Sequence record: PP886230.1
DNA: 64,000 nt
Reading direction: 5' to 3' (one strand)
Part shown: piece after piece, positions 1,559 through 62,942 of the stretch
Position numbering within the stretch: position 1 is the first letter of the stretch
How the letters are laid out: each line of letters starts with the position of its first letter
Notes under the pieces: model-generated
Databases searched by the model: none
What the model was told of the DNA's origin: nothing
What the model saw: only the letters and a program-made list of their open reading frames with translations
Made by a program: the position numbers and the translations under genes

Positions 1559-1769
1559 AAATTCAAAACTATCAGGTTACCGTAACAACACGTTGAAGTA
1601 CAATGATATTAAGTACTGGGTTGATCCTTACTTAAATAAATCATTGTTAATGTACAGAGATAAATCACGAGATCTATATGGAATATATGTTACTCAGTTA
1701 ATATATATAATAGATTCCGAACATTTTACTCCATTGGTATACCTGTACTGCTTGTATAATTCAAAATAA
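1551..1769 (+). CDS. hypothetical protein (72 aa)
   Basis: fills the gap between the Pth2-like gene and the late promoter; TTG start overlapping upstream gene; no motif. Confidence 0.4.
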   Translation: MNKNSKLSGYRNNTLKYNDIKYWVDPYLNKSLLMYRDKSRDLYGIYVTQLIYIIDSEHFTPLVYLYCLYNSK

Positions 1770-2614: not shown

Positions 2615-2642
2615 AAAAGGACTCCTATATGGAGTCTTTTTT
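2615..2642 (+). terminator. intrinsic terminator
   Basis: aaaaggactcc-tatat-ggagtctttttt. Confidence 0.75.
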
Positions 2643-2649
2643 CATATTA

Positions 2650-2660
2650 TGTGATATAAT
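2650..2660 (+). promoter_or_regulatory. extended -10 promoter TGTGATATAAT
   Basis: same TGTGATATAAT string as the promoters at 14990 and 39061; no clear -35. Confidence 0.55.
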
Positions 2661-2687
2661 GATAATATTAATCTAAAGGAACTTGTC

Positions 2688-2957
2688 ATGAATAATAACA
2701 TAAATGTAACGTATAACAGATATCGTTGTGGTAGACCAACGCTTGATTACGAATCAACTGAAAAGTACTGGAAATTTATCAAAGATTCAATCATTGATGT
2801 TATCGGTAGAGATCGAATAAATGCATGGGCGAGTATATATCGTGATGATGATGGGGAAACATTTTTTATTACTTATGTTTCTATATATTATGGTAATGAG
2901 TCAATTCTTGGATTACTTGAAAGTTTAGTAGGAAAGGATTTAATAGAAATTATATAA
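2688..2957 (+). CDS. hypothetical protein (89 aa)
   Basis: AAGGA SD, ATG, downstream of the extended -10 promoter. Confidence 0.6.
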   Translation: MNNNINVTYNRYRCGRPTLDYESTEKYWKFIKDSIIDVIGRDRINAWASIYRDDDGETFFITYVSIYYGNESILGLLESLVGKDLIEII

Positions 2958-2975
2958 AATACATGGAGTAGTATA

Positions 2976-3602
2976 ATGGGAAGACAAATAATTGCAATTA
3001 ACGGAACTATTGGAAGTGGTAAAGATACATTTGGTGAATCTTTTATTAATAATGGTTACACACGAATGTCATTCGCAACCAATCTAAAAGATTCAGTTGC
3101 TGCCATCTTTGGATGGGACCGTGAAATGCTTGAGGGGTCAACTAAGGAAAGTCGTAAGATTCGTGAAGAACCGGATCAGTACTGGTGTGATAAGTTAGGT
3201 CGTAATGATGTATCCCCTCGATGGGTATTGCAGAATTATGGTACTAATATTTTGCGTAAGTATTTTCATAATGATATTTGGGTATTCAGTTTAGAAAAAT
3301 CAATGCAAGACATAGATGGAAATATCATCATCACTGATTGCCGTTTTCCAAATGAATTAAAAATGATTAGATCGAATAATGGGACTATTATTGAAGTTCA
3401 ACGTGTTCTACCACATTGGTATGGTTTGGCTGCCTCTTATAATAAAGGGGATATTAATATTAAACCAGTTGAACTTGAATCAGTACACGAATCTGAGTGG
3501 GCTTGGATTGGAATAAACAATCCTGATATAATTGTACAGAATAACAGTACTATTGATGATTTACATAAAAAAGCAATGGACATTATTTATTCTAATACAT
3601 AA
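2976..3602 (+). CDS. gp1: deoxynucleoside monophosphate kinase (T4 gp1-like)
   Basis: P-loop GTIGSGKDT, SFATNLKD, SPRWVLQNYGT, ITDCRFPNE. Confidence 0.9.
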   Translation: MGRQIIAINGTIGSGKDTFGESFINNGYTRMSFATNLKDSVAAIFGWDREMLEGSTKESRKIREEPDQYWCDKLGRNDVSPRWVLQNYGTNILRKYFHNDIWVFSLEKSMQDIDGNIIITDCRFPNELKMIRSNNGTIIEVQRVLPHWYGLAASYNKGDINIKPVELESVHESEWAWIGINNPDIIVQNNSTIDDLHKKAMDIIYSNT

Positions 3603-3626
3603 ATTATAAACAATAAGGACTGGACA

Positions 3627-3696
3627 ATTAAATCCTTCAATAAATAAGACTATACGAATATATTTCGAATAACCAATTATTTTTGGAGGATTTAAT
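3627..3696 (+). promoter_or_regulatory. late promoter TAAATA (3641-3646) preceded by an anti-SD arm pairing with the sheath SD
   Basis: attaaatccttcaa (3627-3640) pairs with ttggaggatttaat (3683-3696): 13 Watson-Crick pairs plus 1 G-U. Confidence 0.8.
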
Positions 3697-6360
3697 ATGG
3701 CAGGAGATCTACTCTCACCTGGCGTTTCCATTTCAGTAACTGATGAAAGTATGAGTACCGCTGCTGCTCCTGGCACTGTACCACTATTTGTAATCGCTAC
3801 TGCTGAAGACAAACTTGTCCCAGGAAGCAGTGCAATTGCTGCGGGAACTACTAAAGCAAACGCTGGAAAACTACAGCTTCTAACATCACAAAAAAGCTCA
3901 CTTGATACCTATGGTACACCAATTTTTCAAATGAATAACGGTTCTGTTGTTCAAGGTGATGAACTAAACGAATATGGCCTACATGCAGTATATTCTTATC
4001 TAGGCATTACTAACCGTGCATATGTAATTCGTGCTGATATCGATCTAGCACAACTAGCACCAAGTGCTGAAGCACCAACTGGCCCAGTATCCAATGGTAC
4101 TTTGTGGTTTGATACCGCACAATCACAAGTAGAAGCGTATGTAGCGAAGAAAGATAGTCCAAGCAGTTTTTATGATTGGCAACTTAAGCCAGTAACTATT
4201 GTAAGTGCTGAAGAAGTTGAAGATGTAAGTCTAGTAGGTTTAAATGTTGATGATTTAGTTCTACGTTACAAACCAAGCAATGGTCAGATGCTAATGTATA
4301 AACGTTCTGCTTCTGGGCTAGTGCAAATGGAAACTTACCTATCACCAATTAACAAAGTTCCAGTTGGCTCAACTGTAGAAAAAGGTAACATTTGGATTCG
4401 TGATGGTTACACCCAAAATGGTTCAAACTATTTTGGTACTCGTTTTGTTATTAAACGTTATGCATCCCTAACTCAAGTTTGGAATATTGTACCAGCATAT
4501 ACTGGTAATTCATTCCAAGAAATTGAAGCGAAAAGTGGTGTACTAAACAATAGTTATATCGCATCTCGTTTTGATGAAGATAGTAAGAGTTTCTCTTTCT
4601 ATATTCAAAGTGCAAAACTAACAACAATTAGTGCTCCTGCTTTGCCACTTGGTGAAACTATTATTGAACAAGCAGGTGCTGATAGCTATATGACTTTTGT
4701 TTATTTGAATAAATCAGTTAAAGTACTAGCAGTTCCACAAGGCGGTGTTATTAATACCCAAACTATCATCAATAATCTAAATGCAAATGCTGAAATTATT
4801 AACGATGGTTTTAAATTTAAACGTGAAACTAATGGTGGTTTAGTTGTTTCCAATACAAAAGGTTACAGTTTCAAAATCACACAAAGTGGTGATGATATTT
4901 TTGCTGAATCTGAACTACAAAAACTAACTGTAGATAGTAACAACTACTCTCTAATTAACGTTAATAACTTCCGTGTTAGTTATTCAGTACCACGTAGTGT
5001 AGCAAAAGAAGGAACTCTCTGGTATGATTTCGGGAACTCCGATAATTTAACTGTAACTATGTATGTTGCTGATGTTGCTAATGATGAATGGGATCTAGTA
5101 CAAGAAGAAAACAAATATGTACAAGTTGATGAACCAGCGGCTGACCGTTTAATTTGGGTTTGTCCTTTGTCTCAAGGCATTGATGGTTATGATTTCTATC
5201 GCAACGTTGATGGTGAATGGGTTAAACTTGACAGTACTGACCAAAGTACACTAAATGGTATGATTTTCCAAGACTTTAATTTCCCAAGCCAAGTTCCTGC
5301 GGCGGCATTGTATCAAAATGGTATGCTTGCAGTTGACCTAGGTAACACTGAAGGTGTTGTTAAGAAAATGGTTAATGGTCAATGGGAAGTTGTTAGTGGT
5401 GTAAGTCTTGATGGTGCTGGCCTATTTGGTCGTGCTGCACAACGTCAACTAGTAGTTGAAGCACTAGCTGCTGTTATTATTGGTAATGATGACATTCGTT
5501 CTGAATTTATTGATTTTAACCTAATTTGTGTACCTGGTTACGTTGAAACACTTGATGAATGTGTAACTTTAAACACTGATCGTAAAGAAACTGCATTTAT
5601 TGTTACTGACGTTCCAGCACGTTTGAATCCAACCGGAAACGGTAGTGCTGTACAACAATGGGCTACTAATGCTAACAATGCACCAAGTAACGGTTCAGTT
5701 GGTCGTACAACTGCTTATGATTATGCTGCTCAGTATATGGGTTGGTGTCTAAGTACTAACGTTGATGGTGAAGAAGTTGCAGTTCCTGGTAGTACTATTG
5801 CAATGCGTACATATGCATACAGTGATAGTGTTAGTTATGTATGGTATCCACCTGCTGGTACAACTCGTGGTGTTGTAACAAACGCTGCAAGTACTGGTTT
5901 TATCAACAGCGAAGGTGAATATCAACCAGTAGTATACAACCAAGGTCAACGTGACGTTATGTATACTAACAACATTAACCCAATTGCAATGCGTCCTAAC
6001 CGTGGTTTGCTTGTTTATGGAGATAAAACTCTATCTGCTAATCAAACTTCTGCACTAAGTCGTGTTAACGTTGCTCGTTTAGTTGTTTATATTCGTCGTC
6101 AACTAGAAATTATTTCCGAACCATTCCTATTCCGTTTGAATACTCCAAGTACTCGTCAGGAATTTAGTGGTGTAGTTAATAGCTTCTTGGCTGAAATTGT
6201 TCAACAACAGGGTCTTTATAACTTCGCAGTGGTTTGTGATGAAAGTAACAACACCGCAGAGCGTATTGACCGTAATGAACTTTGGATGGATATTGCAATT
6301 CAACCAACTAAGAGTATTAACTTCATTTACGTACCAATCCGTATCGAGAAAACTCAATAA
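3697..6360 (+). CDS. gp18: contractile tail sheath protein (T4 gp18-like, 887 aa)
   Basis: LLSPGVSISVTDES N-terminus; WYPPAGTTRG, YTNNINPI, LLVYGDKTL, SALSRVNVARL, NTAERIDRNELWMDIAIQPTKSINFIYVPI C-terminus. Confidence 0.95.
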   Translation: MAGDLLSPGVSISVTDESMSTAAAPGTVPLFVIATAEDKLVPGSSAIAAGTTKANAGKLQLLTSQKSSLDTYGTPIFQMNNGSVVQGDELNEYGLHAVYSYLGITNRAYVIRADIDLAQLAPSAEAPTGPVSNGTLWFDTAQSQVEAYVAKKDSPSSFYDWQLKPVTIVSAEEVEDVSLVGLNVDDLVLRYKPSNGQMLMYKRSASGLVQMETYLSPINKVPVGSTVEKGNIWIRDGYTQNGSNYFGTRFVIKRYASLTQVWNIVPAYTGNSFQEIEAKSGVLNNSYIASRFDEDSKSFSFYIQSAKLTTISAPALPLGETIIEQAGADSYMTFVYLNKSVKVLAVPQGGVINTQTIINNLNANAEIINDGFKFKRETNGGLVVSNTKGYSFKITQSGDDIFAESELQKLTVDSNNYSLINVNNFRVSYSVPRSVAKEGTLWYDFGNSDNLTVTMYVADVANDEWDLVQEENKYVQVDEPAADRLIWVCPLSQGIDGYDFYRNVDGEWVKLDSTDQSTLNGMIFQDFNFPSQVPAAALYQNGMLAVDLGNTEGVVKKMVNGQWEVVSGVSLDGAGLFGRAAQRQLVVEALAAVIIGNDDIRSEFIDFNLICVPGYVETLDECVTLNTDRKETAFIVTDVPARLNPTGNGSAVQQWATNANNAPSNGSVGRTTAYDYAAQYMGWCLSTNVDGEEVAVPGSTIAMRTYAYSDSVSYVWYPPAGTTRGVVTNAASTGFINSEGEYQPVVYNQGQRDVMYTNNINPIAMRPNRGLLVYGDKTLSANQTSALSRVNVARLVVYIRRQLEIISEPFLFRLNTPSTRQEFSGVVNSFLAEIVQQQGLYNFAVVCDESNNTAERIDRNELWMDIAIQPTKSINFIYVPIRIEKTQ

Positions 6361-6366
6361 AACACT

Positions 6367-6392
6367 AAGGGAACCTTTTGGTTCCCTTTTTT
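6367..6392 (+). terminator. intrinsic terminator
   Basis: aagggaacc-tttt-ggttccctttttt. Confidence 0.85.
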
Positions 6393-6439
6393 ATTGATTA
6401 AAATTAAATACCTTTATATTGATGTTATAAAGGAACATT

Positions 6440-7536: not shown

Positions 7537-8313
7537 ATGGCAAATAACATGATTAATAAATATGGCGTTCCTTTACCATCGGGGCGTAATCGTTCAATGC
7601 TACAACCGAAAGCAAAATACAAGTTTCGTGTTATTGTGTATAATTTCGGTACTGATATAGATGAACGTGATCACATCGCATTAGATGTTGATAAAATTGA
7701 TAGACCTACTGTAACATTTAGTACTCATAAACTATATCAATTTACTACTAATACTTCCTATATAGGTAGTCATGATTGGGAACCAATTACAATATCTATC
7801 CGTGATTCAGTTGGTAATGCATCAGCAAAAGCATTATCACGACAATTACAAAAACAACTTGACTTTCAACGTAGAATAACTTCCAGAAATGACCAAGATT
7901 ATGGTTCTTATAAATTTGGTTTGGTTATACAGATGTTGAGTGGACGTAACTCAGATGATACACTAGGAAATCTAGGAAGAGATACTCTAGTAGATGCTAC
8001 AACTGCTGCAACAAATAATTCTGGCTTAGTAAATGCAGTAGATCAATTTATTGGTGGTTCTTCATATAACAGTGCTGGTGTTATGGAATACTTTGTTTTA
8101 ACCGGATGTGTTATTCAAAACATATCATACGATTCATTAGATTATAGCTCAAGTTCTCCAGTTGAAATGGTAGTTACTATCAAACCAGATAATTGTATAC
8201 AATTTGATAATATTGAAGAAATGTATAGTACCAGAATTAATTCACTTTTACCTGAAAATGTCAATCAAGGTTTAGATATCATTGATCGTGTTTTTGGTAG
8301 TGTAGGATTTTAA
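7537..8313 (+). CDS. tail tube protein 2 (paralog of 6756..7442)
   Basis: shares YGVPL..GR.SM.QPKAKYKFRV, RDSVGNASAKAL and GC.I.....LDYSSS with tube 1; carries a ~40-aa insertion. Confidence 0.8.
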   Translation: MANNMINKYGVPLPSGRNRSMLQPKAKYKFRVIVYNFGTDIDERDHIALDVDKIDRPTVTFSTHKLYQFTTNTSYIGSHDWEPITISIRDSVGNASAKALSRQLQKQLDFQRRITSRNDQDYGSYKFGLVIQMLSGRNSDDTLGNLGRDTLVDATTAATNNSGLVNAVDQFIGGSSYNSAGVMEYFVLTGCVIQNISYDSLDYSSSSPVEMVVTIKPDNCIQFDNIEEMYSTRINSLLPENVNQGLDIIDRVFGSVGF

Positions 8314-14972: not shown

Positions 14973-15000
14973 TTGACAAGTTGAAACGATGTGATATAAT
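14973..15000 (+). promoter_or_regulatory. sigma70-type promoter P2
   Basis: TTGACA-N16-TATAAT with TG extension. Confidence 0.85.
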
Positions 15001-20568: not shown

Positions 20569-22533
20569 TTATCTAATTGTTACCAATGTTCTTCCGTCGA
20601 AACGTACATCAGGAGTTGAAGGTATACTAAACACTACGTTAGTGCCGTTAAACGTAACGCTATCGACCTCAACACGAGTATAGACACCAGGACTAACCTG
20701 TTCCTGTATCTCTGCTGTGACGATGTTTGAGGCTGTTACAGTAAGGGTGTAGTAGTTACCACTTAATACCCAAGATGAAATTGTAAAAGCATCGGTTCTC
20801 ACTGAACCTGAACCAATTGGAACCCATTGACCTTGAACTTTTTGCATTGAAGTACGCTCGGTATTGGAGTATGCAATCATACCATCAACGCCAACAGAGT
20901 TATCAATAGTAGCTAGTACTGGTAATTGGATACCATATCTATTAAAACGTGTTCTTATAGTTCCATTATCATAGATACTTACATCAGCATAATTACCCAT
21001 TGATAGTTTTAAATCAGAACTAACTAATTGGATTGTACTTTGATTAGTAGTACTTTCTAATGTAATTATACCATTAGCTAATAGATTTATATTTTTAAAT
21101 TTATTAGTTGTTCCATTGAAATTAGTGTTTGCTGTAAACGTACTAACTCCATTAACTGTAATTGTATCAGATGCAGCATCGCCTAATGTAGTATTACCTT
21201 GAATGTTCAAATTACCACTAGCAGTGATATTACTAGCTGATGTATCACCAGTCAATGTACTTGTACCATCAACCACAATATTACCATGAAACGCACTTTC
21301 ACCATTTTTAAATTCAACTTGTACTTTATTCATTGAACTAAATGAAATAATATTACTACTAGCACTTAGTCCAACATTAGTATTGGTTGCATTATCAAAT
21401 CTTAGTACTGGGGTTGATGCTGGGGTTGAAGTTGTTTGGTATAATGTTAATGTTGAATTATTAATTCTAATACGTTCAGTTCCAGCAGTACTGAAACCAA
21501 TTGCATCATCTGCTGGATGAAACATACCAGTATTAGCGTCTGACCATTTTGCAGGATCATTACCTGGGTTATTGGTTGGATCAAATGGATTGTTATTAAA
21601 TGTCAATGCTGGTGCTGCTGCACTACCATAGACCACACCAAAACGCCCTGAGCCGCTTGTTCCATCATTATACATGGAATCACCAGTTCTACGTAAACAT
21701 TCAATCACAACGTTATCTATGGATGTTTGTACGGTTCCTGCGTTTGTTCTAAATTGACGATGGTTTGCAATCATTACTGTATTGTCATATAATACAGAAG
21801 CAGCAGAAATGCTTGTTCTTGACTGGCGTAGACGTATGTTTTTATCTTCAGTTATAATGATCCAATCACCATCTGATAGTGCGGTTTGGTTCATTGGAAC
21901 GCCTGAAGCAAATGGTTTGGTTAAGTCAGCATCTGTTGCTAAATTTTTAAGACCATCATGACCAGTACTAGGAATAGATGCAGTAATAATTCTTGCAAAA
22001 GCGTATGTTACAAGTTTAGCACCAGATATATTTGGATTGGAGTCAACATAATATAAAATTTCAATCCAATTACCTTGACCAGTTGGGTTCGTAGGTGTAA
22101 ATGTAACAGGACTTGTTTGTGGATTATTTGCTTCATAATGGGCTTGTGCGGCATCCATAATACCACGAACAACATAATAATCACCATTTAGTGATGCTGC
22201 TGGTGCTGGTAGTGGTGTTTGTGCTAAAGGTGGATCAATATCATCTGGGATAGGATTGTATGTACCAACAAACTGTAAACCACTAGTTACTGAATCTGGT
22301 AATTGGGAAGTAAGAAGTTTACCATTTGCATCTAAGTTTGCAAAGCGGCGATATGCCATAGTACCATCTTCAAAATCCAGAACACCTTCAAATGATTTCC
22401 ATTCCTTATTGTATCTAATCATCCCTGATCTTATTACATCAGCGGTTTCTTTTGATGGTGCTTTCGGTAACTCTAAAAAAGATTTACTATCAATAATTAC
22501 ACCACCATCACCTCTAATTCGATTTATACTCAT
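20569..22533 (-). CDS. tail fibre-associated structural protein (654 aa)
   Basis: GSAAAPALTF...NTGMFHPADDAIGFSTAGTERIRI fibre repeat motif; beta-rich; late TAAATA at 22567-22572 (minus). Confidence 0.6.
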   Translation of the reverse strand: MSINRIRGDGGVIIDSKSFLELPKAPSKETADVIRSGMIRYNKEWKSFEGVLDFEDGTMAYRRFANLDANGKLLTSQLPDSVTSGLQFVGTYNPIPDDIDPPLAQTPLPAPAASLNGDYYVVRGIMDAAQAHYEANNPQTSPVTFTPTNPTGQGNWIEILYYVDSNPNISGAKLVTYAFARIITASIPSTGHDGLKNLATDADLTKPFASGVPMNQTALSDGDWIIITEDKNIRLRQSRTSISAASVLYDNTVMIANHRQFRTNAGTVQTSIDNVVIECLRRTGDSMYNDGTSGSGRFGVVYGSAAAPALTFNNNPFDPTNNPGNDPAKWSDANTGMFHPADDAIGFSTAGTERIRINNSTLTLYQTTSTPASTPVLRFDNATNTNVGLSASSNIISFSSMNKVQVEFKNGESAFHGNIVVDGTSTLTGDTSASNITASGNLNIQGNTTLGDAASDTITVNGVSTFTANTNFNGTTNKFKNINLLANGIITLESTTNQSTIQLVSSDLKLSMGNYADVSIYDNGTIRTRFNRYGIQLPVLATIDNSVGVDGMIAYSNTERTSMQKVQGQWVPIGSGSVRTDAFTISSWVLSGNYYTLTVTASNIVTAEIQEQVSPGVYTRVEVDSVTFNGTNVVFSIPSTPDVRFDGRTLVTIR

Positions 22534-36167: not shown

Positions 36168-37511
36168 TTATTTGTCAGTGAAAGTTATTTTCCAATATCC
36201 CTGACGATACACTGGCATGATACTTTTATGCCATTTAAATTTGTCATTATATCTATAATAACCATTGTCTTCTTTATTATAAATGTAATTTCGTACAGTA
36301 GATGGATCAATTAATTGTGCACCGTCATTTGTAATTTTAAACAAATAATTTGATGGGATTTCGGTTTCTTTATAAATGATGTTATGTATACTGTTATTTA
36401 CATAATATTGTTCAGGTAATGCACTTGAAAGTACTGAATCTTTCTGCACAAACCCATGTATAGTGTAATCAACAGTATAATTGGTATTATCAAGCTGTAC
36501 TATAATTTTGTTGGCATCTTCATTTTCACCATACGACGCTATATGACCTTTTAGTGGGTTGTCTTCTTCAATAGATTGTTGAAATTTAATCCCTACTTTT
36601 TTGTCATCAAAATTTGGTTCTAGATATTTAAGATATTTTTCCCATGAATATATTCCACCGTTGGGAGAAACCGCAGATAGCGATTGGCTAACCAAGGTAA
36701 GTTGGTATGTATCAGGTAAATTATACTTGGAATTAGTAATTTCTTCAACTTTAATGCATAAATTCTTGGGTGTAAAAACATCTGTTATTATATCTGAATA
36801 ATTTCCCATTTCAAAATCAAATTCGTCACGAGCACCTTTAATATTTGTAGTAATCTGTTGGATTAATTTTGGTTTTTCAACAATAGCTGGTAAAGAAAAC
36901 CATATTGTCGTTTCAAATGTTAAAACCATTATATCCAAATCTGGGTCAGTTCCTTGTGGAAAACCACGAGTAGAAAACTGACAATCTATTAGTTCAACAT
37001 CACTAAGCGATGTCCAATCTAACGGGTTATCAGATAATTGAAGTTGTATACTAGGTGCAAACAAAGTTGAGATTTGTTCGAATAATTCCATTTTAGTTTG
37101 AGTTTGAGTTACCCAAATATTCAAATCAAACGTAAAAGTCCAAGGTACTGGGTTATGTCTTACAATTTTGTATTGTGTGTCAAGATCTTTTGTGTACTCA
37201 TTAATAGCAGGGGACTTGTTAGAACCCATTACTATAGTTTCGTTGGCATTAGAACGAATATTTTTACGATCCAACTTTAGTTGATTAACACTTATGGTCA
37301 TTATAGGTGCTGATGGGAGAACATTTTCACTATTCCCATTTATAATTGCTGCTGCCATTCTTGAAATATCGGCATAGCGACATGGAACCTTTTTGTATTT
37401 TGGGTTTCCATTAGCATCAATACCATTTTGTACTTGAAATTCACCAAAAACTCTGATAAGATGTTTCAGTACTCTGCGAAATTGACCGTCATAATAATAA
37501 TCTATTTTCAT
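36168..37511 (-). CDS. gp15: tail terminator / sheath stabiliser (T4 gp15-like) with C-terminal extension
   Basis: YYYDGQFRRVL...F, KVPCRYA, PVPWTFTFDLNIW...ELFEQI...FAPS, LTFETTIW. Confidence 0.8.
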   Translation of the reverse strand: MKIDYYYDGQFRRVLKHLIRVFGEFQVQNGIDANGNPKYKKVPCRYADISRMAAAIINGNSENVLPSAPIMTISVNQLKLDRKNIRSNANETIVMGSNKSPAINEYTKDLDTQYKIVRHNPVPWTFTFDLNIWVTQTQTKMELFEQISTLFAPSIQLQLSDNPLDWTSLSDVELIDCQFSTRGFPQGTDPDLDIMVLTFETTIWFSLPAIVEKPKLIQQITTNIKGARDEFDFEMGNYSDIITDVFTPKNLCIKVEEITNSKYNLPDTYQLTLVSQSLSAVSPNGGIYSWEKYLKYLEPNFDDKKVGIKFQQSIEEDNPLKGHIASYGENEDANKIIVQLDNTNYTVDYTIHGFVQKDSVLSSALPEQYYVNNSIHNIIYKETEIPSNYLFKITNDGAQLIDPSTVRNYIYNKEDNGYYRYNDKFKWHKSIMPVYRQGYWKITFTDK

Positions 37512-39001
37512 TCTGTGTCCTTATGTATGCGATAAACAGTATTAGGTTTAACTGCGTCATGTAATGGAACTTTGTTATCACTATTTACAAACTGTGTAAG
37601 TGCTAAGTCTGCACCTTCCCACGGTTTTCTTCCACCATAATCAAAAATAACCCATGAATTCTTAGTTGCATTGAATTCCCATAACGTAACTGGAGTATAA
37701 TCGGTGCGATAGAAATAGTCACCATCTACTGCATCAGTTGGGAACATATTTCCTTCAGGGACTGTACCTCGTGCTGGTGGAATTTTAGGACGATAATCTT
37801 GTTGCGAATCAATATTACCATATACACAATTGGACGTGAATGGTTCATTGACATAAGTTACCTTTGGTTCCCCCCACTTGTCATCATTATACTGATAAAT
37901 GTGTGGTTCTTTATAAAAAATACAAAAATCTTCCACATCTTCTGGTGGAACATCACTGGTAGTATATTCTACATCACAATTTAACCATTTTTTAGCACTT
38001 TTATCATATTGATACAACGTATAACCTGTCACATCTGCGTCATTTTCTTTAAAGAAGAAGTCACCATCCATTGGTTTTATGGGAAAGATGGTTCCACGCT
38101 TGACTTCCACAGAAATCCATGTATCATTAACAAACTCTTTGAGTACTGGGTATGTTTTTTTCAAAAAATACATTCCATCGGCAGGTTCTTCTGGAAAATC
38201 ATAACCGTTAAGCATATATTTTGATAAATCTACTGTATCAGGTCGATCATCATACAAATGTTCATTTGTATAATGAATATAGGGTACTTCATCATCAGCT
38301 TGCATGATGATACGGTTCATGATATCCATTTCATTGCCATAGTTACTGTTTTCCGACGAACCATCATCGGTATTTCCATTACCATTATTAGGGTCATCTG
38401 GATTATCAGGATAATTATTGTTACCGAGTAAATCGGAGTACTCAGGTGAGTCGGTTAGCGGTTTAACTCTAAGTTTATAAATGTGATGTTGCCACGTAAC
38501 CGAGTATCCCTCAGATGTACGAAATGCATCTTGGACGACATAGAAGCGGTTTAGACCTGTATCTTTACCCAATACATCAAAATCACGTAAATTTGGTAGT
38601 TCTATCACATCCCCTGGCATGATTTTTCTACCTAAACGCTGCATCATTGTATTATAATGGATTGTGATGTCCATAGTGTTGAAATTAAAGAACAATCCTG
38701 GGATTTTCAAGTCTGGAGTTGCTTCTTGAACTTGATAGACACAACTAAGTGTGATAGCTTCAAGGTTGTAGTTTCTGTTTGGTGTGTCACCAAAAATTAA
38801 ATCGCCAATACTTGACACAACTGATCCTGAAGATGTATAATCACCTCCATAGGATAAGTCAGTGTTGTCAGCAACTTGTTTTGGACCGACATATGCATAA
38901 AGCCACATGTCAACTCCACCAATGTTGTATTGTTCAGCAATGGCAGAATCAATGAACTTGTAATCATTGGTTCTACCTTTTTTCCACATTCTATATGTCA
39001 T
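37508..39001 (-). CDS. gp14: neck protein (T4 gp14-like) with repetitive C-terminal extension
   Basis: DYKFIDSAIAEQYNIGGVDM, DLIFGDTPNRNY, LGRKIMPGDVIELP; FP..P.DG.YF repeats; GGAG SD favours ATG 39001. Confidence 0.75.
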   Translation of the reverse strand: MTYRMWKKGRTNDYKFIDSAIAEQYNIGGVDMWLYAYVGPKQVADNTDLSYGGDYTSSGSVVSSIGDLIFGDTPNRNYNLEAITLSCVYQVQEATPDLKIPGLFFNFNTMDITIHYNTMMQRLGRKIMPGDVIELPNLRDFDVLGKDTGLNRFYVVQDAFRTSEGYSVTWQHHIYKLRVKPLTDSPEYSDLLGNNNYPDNPDDPNNGNGNTDDGSSENSNYGNEMDIMNRIIMQADDEVPYIHYTNEHLYDDRPDTVDLSKYMLNGYDFPEEPADGMYFLKKTYPVLKEFVNDTWISVEVKRGTIFPIKPMDGDFFFKENDADVTGYTLYQYDKSAKKWLNCDVEYTTSDVPPEDVEDFCIFYKEPHIYQYNDDKWGEPKVTYVNEPFTSNCVYGNIDSQQDYRPKIPPARGTVPEGNMFPTDAVDGDYFYRTDYTPVTLWEFNATKNSWVIFDYGGRKPWEGADLALTQFVNSDNKVPLHDAVKPNTVYRIHKDTE

Positions 39002-39003
39002 GA

Positions 39004-39071
39004 TTGTCTCCAAAATAAATCGGGTATATCTTTATTTACCTTGTAGACAAACCGTAAGAATGTGATATAAT
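39004..39071. promoter_or_regulatory. bidirectional element: minus late promoter (39033-39038) and plus TAGACA-N16-TATAAT (39044-39071); anti-SD arm for gp14
   Basis: TATTTA-N5-TAGACA-N16-TATAAT; ttgtctccaa (39004-39013) versus ttgtagacaa (39041-39050) is a 9/10 inverted repeat. Confidence 0.7.
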
Positions 39072-62102: not shown

Positions 62103-62942
62103 ATGACAAATAGACCAAAGCGTAAAAAGTATCTCAATAATGCTGATTTACTTCGTGAAATACAAAAAAGTAAAATTTCATATTGCTGGTTATTAGACAA
62201 ATCATATAGTATGTATGATTATATTGTTTTTCATGAGTCAGAAATTACTGCTGAGTTACTAGAAAAAGCTAAGGCAGCCCGAATTAAACGACTGAACAAT
62301 GAAATGCTTGATAGTATTCGTGAAAAGGAAAATATGAGTGCTAAAAAAGCTAAAGAATATGCAGATGAACACAATTTAGTTATCACTGACGTTCCAATTG
62401 ATGAAGTTGTTATTCGTGTTATTACAGATGAACATATTCCACCAGATACTAGAGTTAACTTTGAACCATTCAAGCATTATATTGTAGATAATGAAGGTAT
62501 TCTCTATGAAGTTTGTCGTTCTCACTGGAAAGGCGACCTTGAAACTGGTGAATTCAGTACTGTTCATGGTAAAATTACAAATGAACTTGGGAAGATGTTC
62601 ATTAAACTTGCAGAGGAAATCTCACACAAATCTAATTACAGAAACTATACATACTTAGATGAAATGATGGGTGATGCAAGAATACAATTAGTTAAAAACG
62701 CACTTCTCTTTAAAGAGAGCATTCTTTATAAAAAAGATAAACCAGCAGTTCAGCTAAATCCTTTCTCTTACTATACATCATTCGTAAACAATAGTTTTCG
62801 TTCTATATTGAATAGTGAGAAAAATGTTCGAAATATACGTGATGATTTACTTGAAATGCATGGCTTTACGCCATCACATACACGTCAAATTGAAATTGAA
62901 TTGAACATGATTGAAAGGAAAAATGAAGATGGCTCTGTTTGA
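62103..62942 (+). CDS. gp55: late-transcription sigma factor (T4 gp55-like)
   Basis: YLNNADLLREI, LGKMFIKLAEEISHKSNYRNYTYLDEMMGDA, NPFSYYT....NSF..IL..EK. Confidence 0.85.
   Translation: MTNRPKRKKYLNNADLLREIQKSKISYCWLLDKSYSMYDYIVFHESEITAELLEKAKAARIKRLNNEMLDSIREKENMSAKKAKEYADEHNLVITDVPIDEVVIRVITDEHIPPDTRVNFEPFKHYIVDNEGILYEVCRSHWKGDLETGEFSTVHGKITNELGKMFIKLAEEISHKSNYRNYTYLDEMMGDARIQLVKNALLFKESILYKKDKPAVQLNPFSYYTSFVNNSFRSILNSEKNVRNIRDDLLEMHGFTPSHTRQIEIELNMIERKNEDGSV

Follow-up and report, generated by a model that had tools for sequence, protein, structure and literature searches.

The tail sheath gene of Escherichia phage vB_EcoM_E9.1 is preceded by a long predicted hairpin that covers its Shine-Dalgarno (SD) sequence and holds the core of a late promoter in its loop. 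We found this element in a 64,000-nucleotide stretch of the phage genome (124001-188000 of PP886230.1, here called the window, whose numbering is used throughout), and the structure is real and under selection. Its probable role is that of a translational insulator with the promoter set in the hairpin, as at gene e of T4, which shields the sheath gene from transcription that arrives from upstream. By megablast, the region 2900-4400 was 100% identical to vB_EcoM_E9.1 and showed 98-99.7% matches to 121Q, PBECO4, G17 and other Asteriusvirus jumbo phages; the phage group is that of the 121Q/PBECO4 (RaK2-like) jumbo phages.

All parts of the element lie on the plus strand. The 5' arm, an anti-SD sequence, is located at 3627-3640 with its core ATCCTTCAA at 3632-3640, and is directly adjoined by the late-promoter core TAAATA at 3641-3646 (within AATAAATA at 3639-3646). 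Predicted folds place a small hairpin at 3651-3671, with the stem 3655-3658/3664-3667. The 3' arm at 3683-3696 contains the SD GGAGG (3685-3689) and the spacer up to the start codon. The sheath gene itself (3697-6360, ATG at 3697-3699) encodes 887 amino acids and was identified by Pfam PF17482, by tblastn and by the record annotation. Thirteen Watson-Crick pairs and one G-U pair (T3637 with G3686) join 3627-3640 to 3683-3696. The original prediction, made from the bare letters, had described exactly this 14-bp stem over the SD and up to the ATG, with TAAATA beginning at the very next base after the 5' arm, and the base positions agree with it in both respects. It had also named the upstream gene (2976-3602, plus strand) a deoxynucleoside monophosphate (dNMP) kinase, which Pfam PF21448 (44.9 bits, cut-off 27.1) and the record annotation bear out; we infer the "pre-replicative" timing that it gave to this kinase from T4 gene 1. 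No match to the curated cis-regulatory covariance models of Rfam was found in 3400-3900 at E <= 1. We also considered whether the 5' arm, read in reverse complement, could be the SD of a minus-strand gene, and rejected this: no fitting start codon stands at the right spacing, and the upstream sequence is unconserved.

Through RNAfold prediction, the stem between the 5' arm and the SD was found in both the minimum-energy and the centroid structures of RNAs of 86, 118 and 236 nucleotides (nt). The predicted stem reaches back to 3620 and is lengthened to 3620-3647/3677-3703, and the U and G of the AUG are thereby paired too. Compared with dinucleotide shuffles, the three RNAs gave z scores of -5.8, -4.9 and -4.5, and the shuffles that folded equally well numbered 0/200, 0/200 and 1/200, respectively. 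For the duplex of arm and SD, the SD/AUG window was matched with the 45 nt that precede the predicted late start; the duplex has an energy of -16.5 kcal/mol, and none of 300 shuffles was as stable.

Pairing probabilities were computed for every annotated gene start in the window (53 genes) with two RNAs each: a read-through RNA from -130 to +30, and a late RNA beginning at the predicted late start, or at -30 if the gene has no TAAATA. The SD-to-AUG window of the sheath gene had a computed pairing of 0.95 in the read-through RNA, the top of the 53 genes, and 0.81 of this was with bases upstream of the predicted late start. In the late RNA the computed pairing was 0.37, so the long RNA is predicted to be closed to ribosomes and the late RNA to be open. 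The fold of 3652-3735 left GGAGG unpaired except for a weak 4-bp CCAA/UUGG helix, had a small stem-loop at its 5' end, and was unremarkable in stability (z = -1.1). An SD helix of the strength predicted for the long RNA reportedly lowers initiation by orders of magnitude, according to the work of de Smit and van Duin.

TAAATA is the T4-like late -10 element of this phage group, because of its position before structural genes, its scarcity overall, the motif predicted in CBB and GAP32, and the presence of a gp55-like sigma factor. On the coding strand, 18 copies precede annotated starts by 34-64 nt, whereas position alone would account for about 0.7 (a hand estimate). The genes behind them are mostly structural, and include those of the adaptor, sheath, tubes, fibre, baseplate and virion proteins. 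In its passages on promoters, the CBB and GAP32 paper (PMC5259590) gives ATAAATA as a predicted late promoter upstream of structural genes, and likens it to TATAAATA of T4. The gene for a gp55-like late sigma factor is located at 62103-62942 (phrog_12791, 3e-154; phrog_234 'late sigma transcription factor', 8e-18), and the record annotation agrees. By analogy with T4 late promoters, the late sheath transcript would start near 3652, about 6 nt past the motif. TAAATA stands at -51 to -59 of the sheath gene in all relatives, against about -40 at other late genes, and the longer sheath leader is itself conserved.

Overall, the motif was rarer in the window than expected: 46 copies of TAAATA against 118, 14 of ATAAATA against 37, and 2 of TATAAATA against 10. 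This depletion, with the surviving copies before structural genes, looks like selection against stray late promoters.

The element is conserved far beyond the close relatives of the phage. A tblastn search with the sheath protein gave 72 records at E <= 1e-150, and kinase-sheath regions were taken from 21 GenBank phages and from IMG/VR contigs; the intergenic regions of 22 relatives were folded, and 18 non-redundant sequences entered the pairing counts. The relatives comprise Asteriusvirus, Alcyoneusvirus (RaK2, Muenster), Eneladusvirus (BF, Yen9-04, SNUABM_12) and Mimasvirus (GAP32, CBB, XbC2), and further Munch/fENko-Kae01, EJP2, Hallingskeid, Kaldavass, XaC1 and one metagenomic contig, with sheath identities down to 63%. 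All 22 have the order kinase, anti-SD, TAAATA, small hairpin, SD and sheath. In detail, all of them have a box ATCCTCCAA, in some with one base changed, then TAAATA at once, a short hairpin (TATACGAATATTCGAATA or similar), TTGGAGGAT and the ATG. The single-sequence minimum-energy fold contained the stem of anti-SD and SD in each of the 22 relatives. When anchored on TAAATA and TTGGAGG, 18 of 18 non-redundant sequences showed 9-14 contiguous ungapped pairs; the core ATCCTTCAA of the 5' arm was conserved in 22 of 22 relatives, and TTGGAGGA of the 3' arm was invariant in the 18 sequences.

In the alignment of these regions (A1), the 5' arm marks the exact point at which conservation sets in, and the intergenic DNA before the box is poorly conserved. 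Over the 10 nt that precede TAAATA, mean pairwise identity was 0.87 at the sheath gene, with a background of 0.45-0.47 further upstream. At the tail-tube late promoters, aligned for the same 16 genomes with TAAATA as anchor, the value for these 10 nt was 0.43. Therefore, the box is not a general feature of late promoters. The start codon of the sheath gene is also conserved in the alignment. Two annotation matters were noticed on the way: the annotated sheath start of UE-S1 lies 27 nt past the conserved ATG (901 vs 928), and the sheath gene of CRJP21 (OQ708376.1) is labelled 'head completion protein'.

A scan of IMG/VR for the 15-mer of anti-SD and promoter gave at least 117 matches. Among the matches listed, four had the full element (three known relatives and one new contig), all of them at sheath genes, and the remaining ones look like chance. 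The distant Stenotrophomonas phage CM1 has another arrangement. Its sheath gene follows a tail-sheath-stabiliser gene (phrog_227) and then a strong terminator, and has TAAATA at -35 and a short leader without anti-SD or hairpin. We also considered the upstream open reading frame (ORF) of CM1 as an adaptor homologue and rejected it, since BLASTP found no similarity and PHROGs gave tail sheath stabiliser. With its structural neighbour and terminator CM1 lacks the hairpin, and thus, in this single comparison, the hairpin appears to go with a non-structural gene directly upstream and no terminator.

An insulator needs upstream RNA to act on, and the region before the sheath gene offers a likely source. 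An intrinsic terminator is located 3' of the head-tail adaptor gene at 2620-2642 on the plus strand (stem 2620-2625/2631-2636, then six T); the terminator scan lists this hairpin on the minus strand only, and the T-run was read on the plus strand. It is followed at 2652-2660 by the extended -10 site TGaTATAAT (TGATATAAT, plus strand), upstream of an ORF at 2688-2957 and of the kinase gene. The exact 9-mer TGATATAAT is also found ahead of non-structural genes at 14992, 18061 and 39063 (plus strand), and is likely, from these positions, to be an early or middle promoter. Further plus-strand copies at 3524, 9251 and 11353 lie within genes, that at 3524 in the 3' end of the kinase gene, and are probably chance. 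The copy at 3524 was considered as a dedicated promoter of the sheath leader and rejected, as UE-S1 is the only other phage to have it. The original prediction had seen no terminator between kinase and sheath, and a plus-strand scan indeed found no terminator-like site in 2640-3697. A 50-kb run of co-oriented, mostly non-structural genes lies upstream of the window. Considering the adaptor terminator, the extended -10 site at 2652, the co-oriented gene run and the missing terminator between kinase and sheath, pre-late transcription plausibly runs rightward through the kinase gene into the sheath leader.

We propose the following course of events. RNA started upstream, probably from the TGaTATAAT at 2652, would pass through the kinase operon and, since it meets no terminator on the way, continue into the sheath gene. 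Such long transcripts would carry the anti-SD arm 3627-3640, and the arm would pair with the SD, the spacer and the AUG of the sheath gene. The paired SD and AUG would keep 30S subunits off, and no sheath protein would be made from the long RNA, if the block is as large as the stem suggests. Later, the gp55-like sigma factor would bring RNA polymerase to the TAAATA that adjoins the 5' arm. With a late start near 3652, about 11 nt downstream of the 5' arm, the mRNA would lack the arm; it would have the small stem-loop at its front and a free SD, and sheath would be translated.

Several points weigh against this proposal. All the folds are predictions. Our literature search found no transcriptomes for the phage group, and the timing of the kinase rests on inference. 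In several genera (Munch, fENko-Kae01, Hallingskeid, BF, GAP32, CBB and others), the region of about 60 nt before the kinase start holds a strong intrinsic terminator; the gene itself follows within a few bases, and no recognisable promoter was found in between. The core stem shows no covariation: by RNAalifold and by pair count on the alignment, no pair had changed on both sides. Finally, the core of the 5' arm has undergone five independent substitutions, and two of them break a pair (in A4 and in Kaldavass/XbC2). The other three are C to U changes that keep a G-U pair (the window group, GAP32 and CBB), and the split of three to two is not significant. A separate observation at the kinase junction is that EJP2 has TATAAT within the loop of the terminator upstream of its kinase gene.

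A lack of compensatory covariation in homologs had been named as grounds for refuting the original prediction. Such covariation is indeed absent in the core because the SD arm never varies, and an invariant SD gives the test no power; in the alignment 97% of cells are paired, and shuffles match the observed value. The case for the structure rests on conservation and thermodynamics. Outside the core, anchored and ungapped pair tables showed weak swaps in the A/T-only extension. At one position there, the window group has A-U where CBB, EJP2 and Kaldavass have U-A, and BF and GAP32 show mismatches as intermediates. This is no more than suggestive of pairing that has been kept.

Missing covariation and the conservation of both arms as sequence would also be seen if the box upstream of TAAATA were a signal in the DNA itself, for instance an upstream element of the promoter or a protein-binding inverted repeat, whose complementarity to the SD is incidental. 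We hold this to be highly improbable, since conserved upstream boxes are absent from other late promoters, the distance between the arms is about 40 bp and varies (38-44 nt), the box is an exact complement of the SD, and lineage-specific extensions keep the pairing, as at the A-U/U-A position above.

The hairpin might instead act mainly in RNA processing or stability, either as an RNase III-type cleavage site that parts the kinase mRNA from the sheath mRNA or as a 3' protective hairpin for the kinase RNA, with the hiding of the SD as a by-product. The stem with its inner extension is about 22 bp with one bulge, roughly an RNase III length, it lies exactly between two genes of different function, and a conserved inner hairpin is present. 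However, across the genera only the 9-10 bp complementary to the SD are conserved, while the outer and inner extensions vary, and the stems of 9-14 bp in most genera are short for RNase III. The 5' arm also always adjoins the late promoter, which would be needless for a processing site. A processing role as the main one is therefore unlikely in our judgement.

A third possibility is an unconventional terminator or attenuator: the hairpin would stop early RNA ahead of the sheath gene, and late RNA, started from the promoter in the loop, would never form it. T-runs follow the sheath 3' arm in RaK2 and Muenster, and a related element before the adaptor gene, described below, has a G+C-rich 8-bp stem and then T6. 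But behind the 3' arm the window and most genera have AUUUAAUAUGG or AUUAAAUGG and no U-tract; the loop of 38-44 nt (42 nt in the window) is long and the stem is A/U-rich. The terminator scan, which listed an intrinsic terminator 3' of the sheath gene at 6367-6394 (plus strand), left the sheath element unflagged, and the element does not have the make-up of an intrinsic terminator, which is a G+C-rich stem and a short loop with a U-tract directly behind. We give this idea little chance at the sheath element; a terminator role is plausible at the adaptor element.

Translational insulation remains our preferred reading, and one part of the element may go beyond it. In the read-through RNA the small hairpin at 3651-3671 is predicted to be the apical part of the long hairpin, and in the late sheath mRNA it would form a 5'-terminal stem-loop. 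Its CGA/UCG and UAU/AUA pairs are kept in 16-18 of the 18 sequences while the length and the sequence of its loop vary, and in most genera it is a perfect CGAATATTCG palindrome. Other late leaders have no such hairpin. The inner hairpin might stabilise the late sheath mRNA, which is very abundant, or be the binding site of a phage factor that controls how much sheath is made. We might speculate, as a rather doubtful extension, that the element is a four-part module (anti-SD box, late promoter, 5'-terminal hairpin and SD) kept at the sheath gene in at least seven lineages, in which the hairpin has a function of its own, and that the adaptor element is a late promoter inside a terminator. If this is true, the adaptor element ends the long early cluster, and these jumbo phages mark early-to-late boundaries with dual-purpose RNA structures.

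The original prediction had reported a second, unrelated pair of arms with the same geometry, and we found it before the head-tail adaptor gene at 1775-1819 on the plus strand. The 5' arm 1775-1782 (AGCACCTC) is followed by TAAATA at 1783-1788, by the 3' arm with the SD at 1807-1814 (GAGGTGCT), by a T-run to 1819 and by the ATG at 1820. The stem is G+C-rich with 8 bp and is followed by T6, as in an intrinsic terminator that has the late promoter in its loop, and the adaptor element may thus stop early transcription as well. More than 50 kb of co-oriented, mostly non-structural genes end at this element. Munch, Hallingskeid and A4 have it too, and its stem shows a compensatory change, U-A in the window vs C-G in Munch. 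We also noticed a perfect TATAAT at 1755-1760 (plus strand), about 15 nt upstream of the adaptor 5' arm and in the 3' end of a small ORF at 1650-1769; a transcript from it, if active, would carry the adaptor anti-SD arm.

How far the design extends was judged with an annotation-free scan of the window and the preceding 50 kb (114 kb) for TAAATA, SD, ATG and an ORF of at least 60 amino acids. It gave 21 candidate late promoters, and in three of them the duplex between upstream arm and SD exceeded shuffles: the sheath gene (-16.5 kcal/mol, z -5.5), the adaptor gene (-14.7 kcal/mol, z -3.4) and, as a possible third case, a virion gene at 37508-39001 on the minus strand (-13.7 kcal/mol, z -3.4). 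At the third one (39001-39040, minus strand) the late promoter TAAATAAA itself pairs with TTTATTT beside the SD, and the upstream region is divergent. The other 18 had z about 0 and no excess complementarity. Most other late promoters sit directly 3' of an intrinsic terminator, for example at 7537 and, on the minus strand, at 22533, 51409 and 54950.

The original prediction had taken the two elements for a reusable cassette, likely a general timing system that insulates structural genes in this phage, and had expected complements of the SD immediately 5' of TAAATA elsewhere in the genome. Over the 114 kb, that expectation held for the sheath gene, the adaptor gene and possibly the gene at 39001, and failed for the other 18. 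The same geometry at the adaptor gene, the possible third case and a tail-tube version in the RaK2 lineage speak for a general system. In contrast, 18 of the 21 candidates have z about 0, most with a terminator immediately upstream, and the arms have no common sequence beyond what each SD dictates. A general timing system is very unlikely on these counts. Nor is there a shared cassette, because each arm merely complements the SD of its own gene; what is repeated is a design. RaK2 and Muenster have an anti-SD of their own directly before TAAATA, some 60 nt ahead of their tail-tube gene (near 3686 in the regions taken from these phages), where ATTTCTCCA (or ATTTCTCTA) pairs with TGGAGAAAT, and the phage of the window has no such element there. 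The design thus seems to appear at different late genes in different lineages.

Inhibitory structures at initiation regions are known from T4, where they occur at genes e, soc, 49 and I-TevI (PMC3014915). In the case of gene e, early transcripts that extend into the gene form the structure, late-promoter RNA lacks its 5' portion and is well translated, the helix over the SD has a 100-fold effect, and relatives of T4 keep a late promoter in the region that encodes the 5' strand (PMC3014915). The sheath element resembles gene e in the following points. In silico, its SD and start codon lie in a stable helix on long RNA started upstream. A late promoter of the TATAAATA type lies in or next to the 5' strand, so placed that late RNA from the presumed start would lack that strand, and the arrangement is conserved among related phages. 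Helix and promoter placement both being of the T4 kind at the sequence level, we therefore file the element with T4-type control.

The differences from gene e are also clear. T4 e is a lysis enzyme, whereas here a major structural protein, the tail sheath, is concerned; the phages are RaK2/121Q-like jumbo phages with the promoter core TAAATA/ATAAATA; the promoter core directly follows the last base of the 5' arm; and the loop is taken up by a further conserved hairpin, which would sit at the front of the late mRNA. The sheath element is described here from sequence and predicted folds. With soc, 49 and I-TevI it shares a ribosome site that would be hidden on early or middle RNA and freed on late RNA, and the occurrence at several unrelated genes of one phage (here sheath and adaptor), although the genes are others and the sequences are unrelated. 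For I-TevI the effect of deleting the 5' strand was measured (Gibb and Edgell, cited in PMC3014915), while the sheath element is known by prediction. Nearer relatives offer the same motif upstream of structural genes, in the ATAAATA of CBB and GAP32; the promoter and transcription passages of PMC5259590 contain no mention of an SD-sequestering hairpin, and a literature search of Asteriusvirus papers found no description of a promoter or hairpin.

For the annotation of the group, the gain is a late promoter core, a probable late start and leader of the sheath gene, and early-to-late boundaries at the adaptor and sheath genes. Early RNA sequencing coverage of the sheath gene need not mean early sheath synthesis. 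In kind the mechanism is long known from T4 and is no new class of regulation; what is new is a well-conserved instance in RaK2/121Q-like jumbo phages at the tail sheath gene, by which the T4 way of keeping late proteins off early read-through RNA would be strongly conserved in these distant phages.

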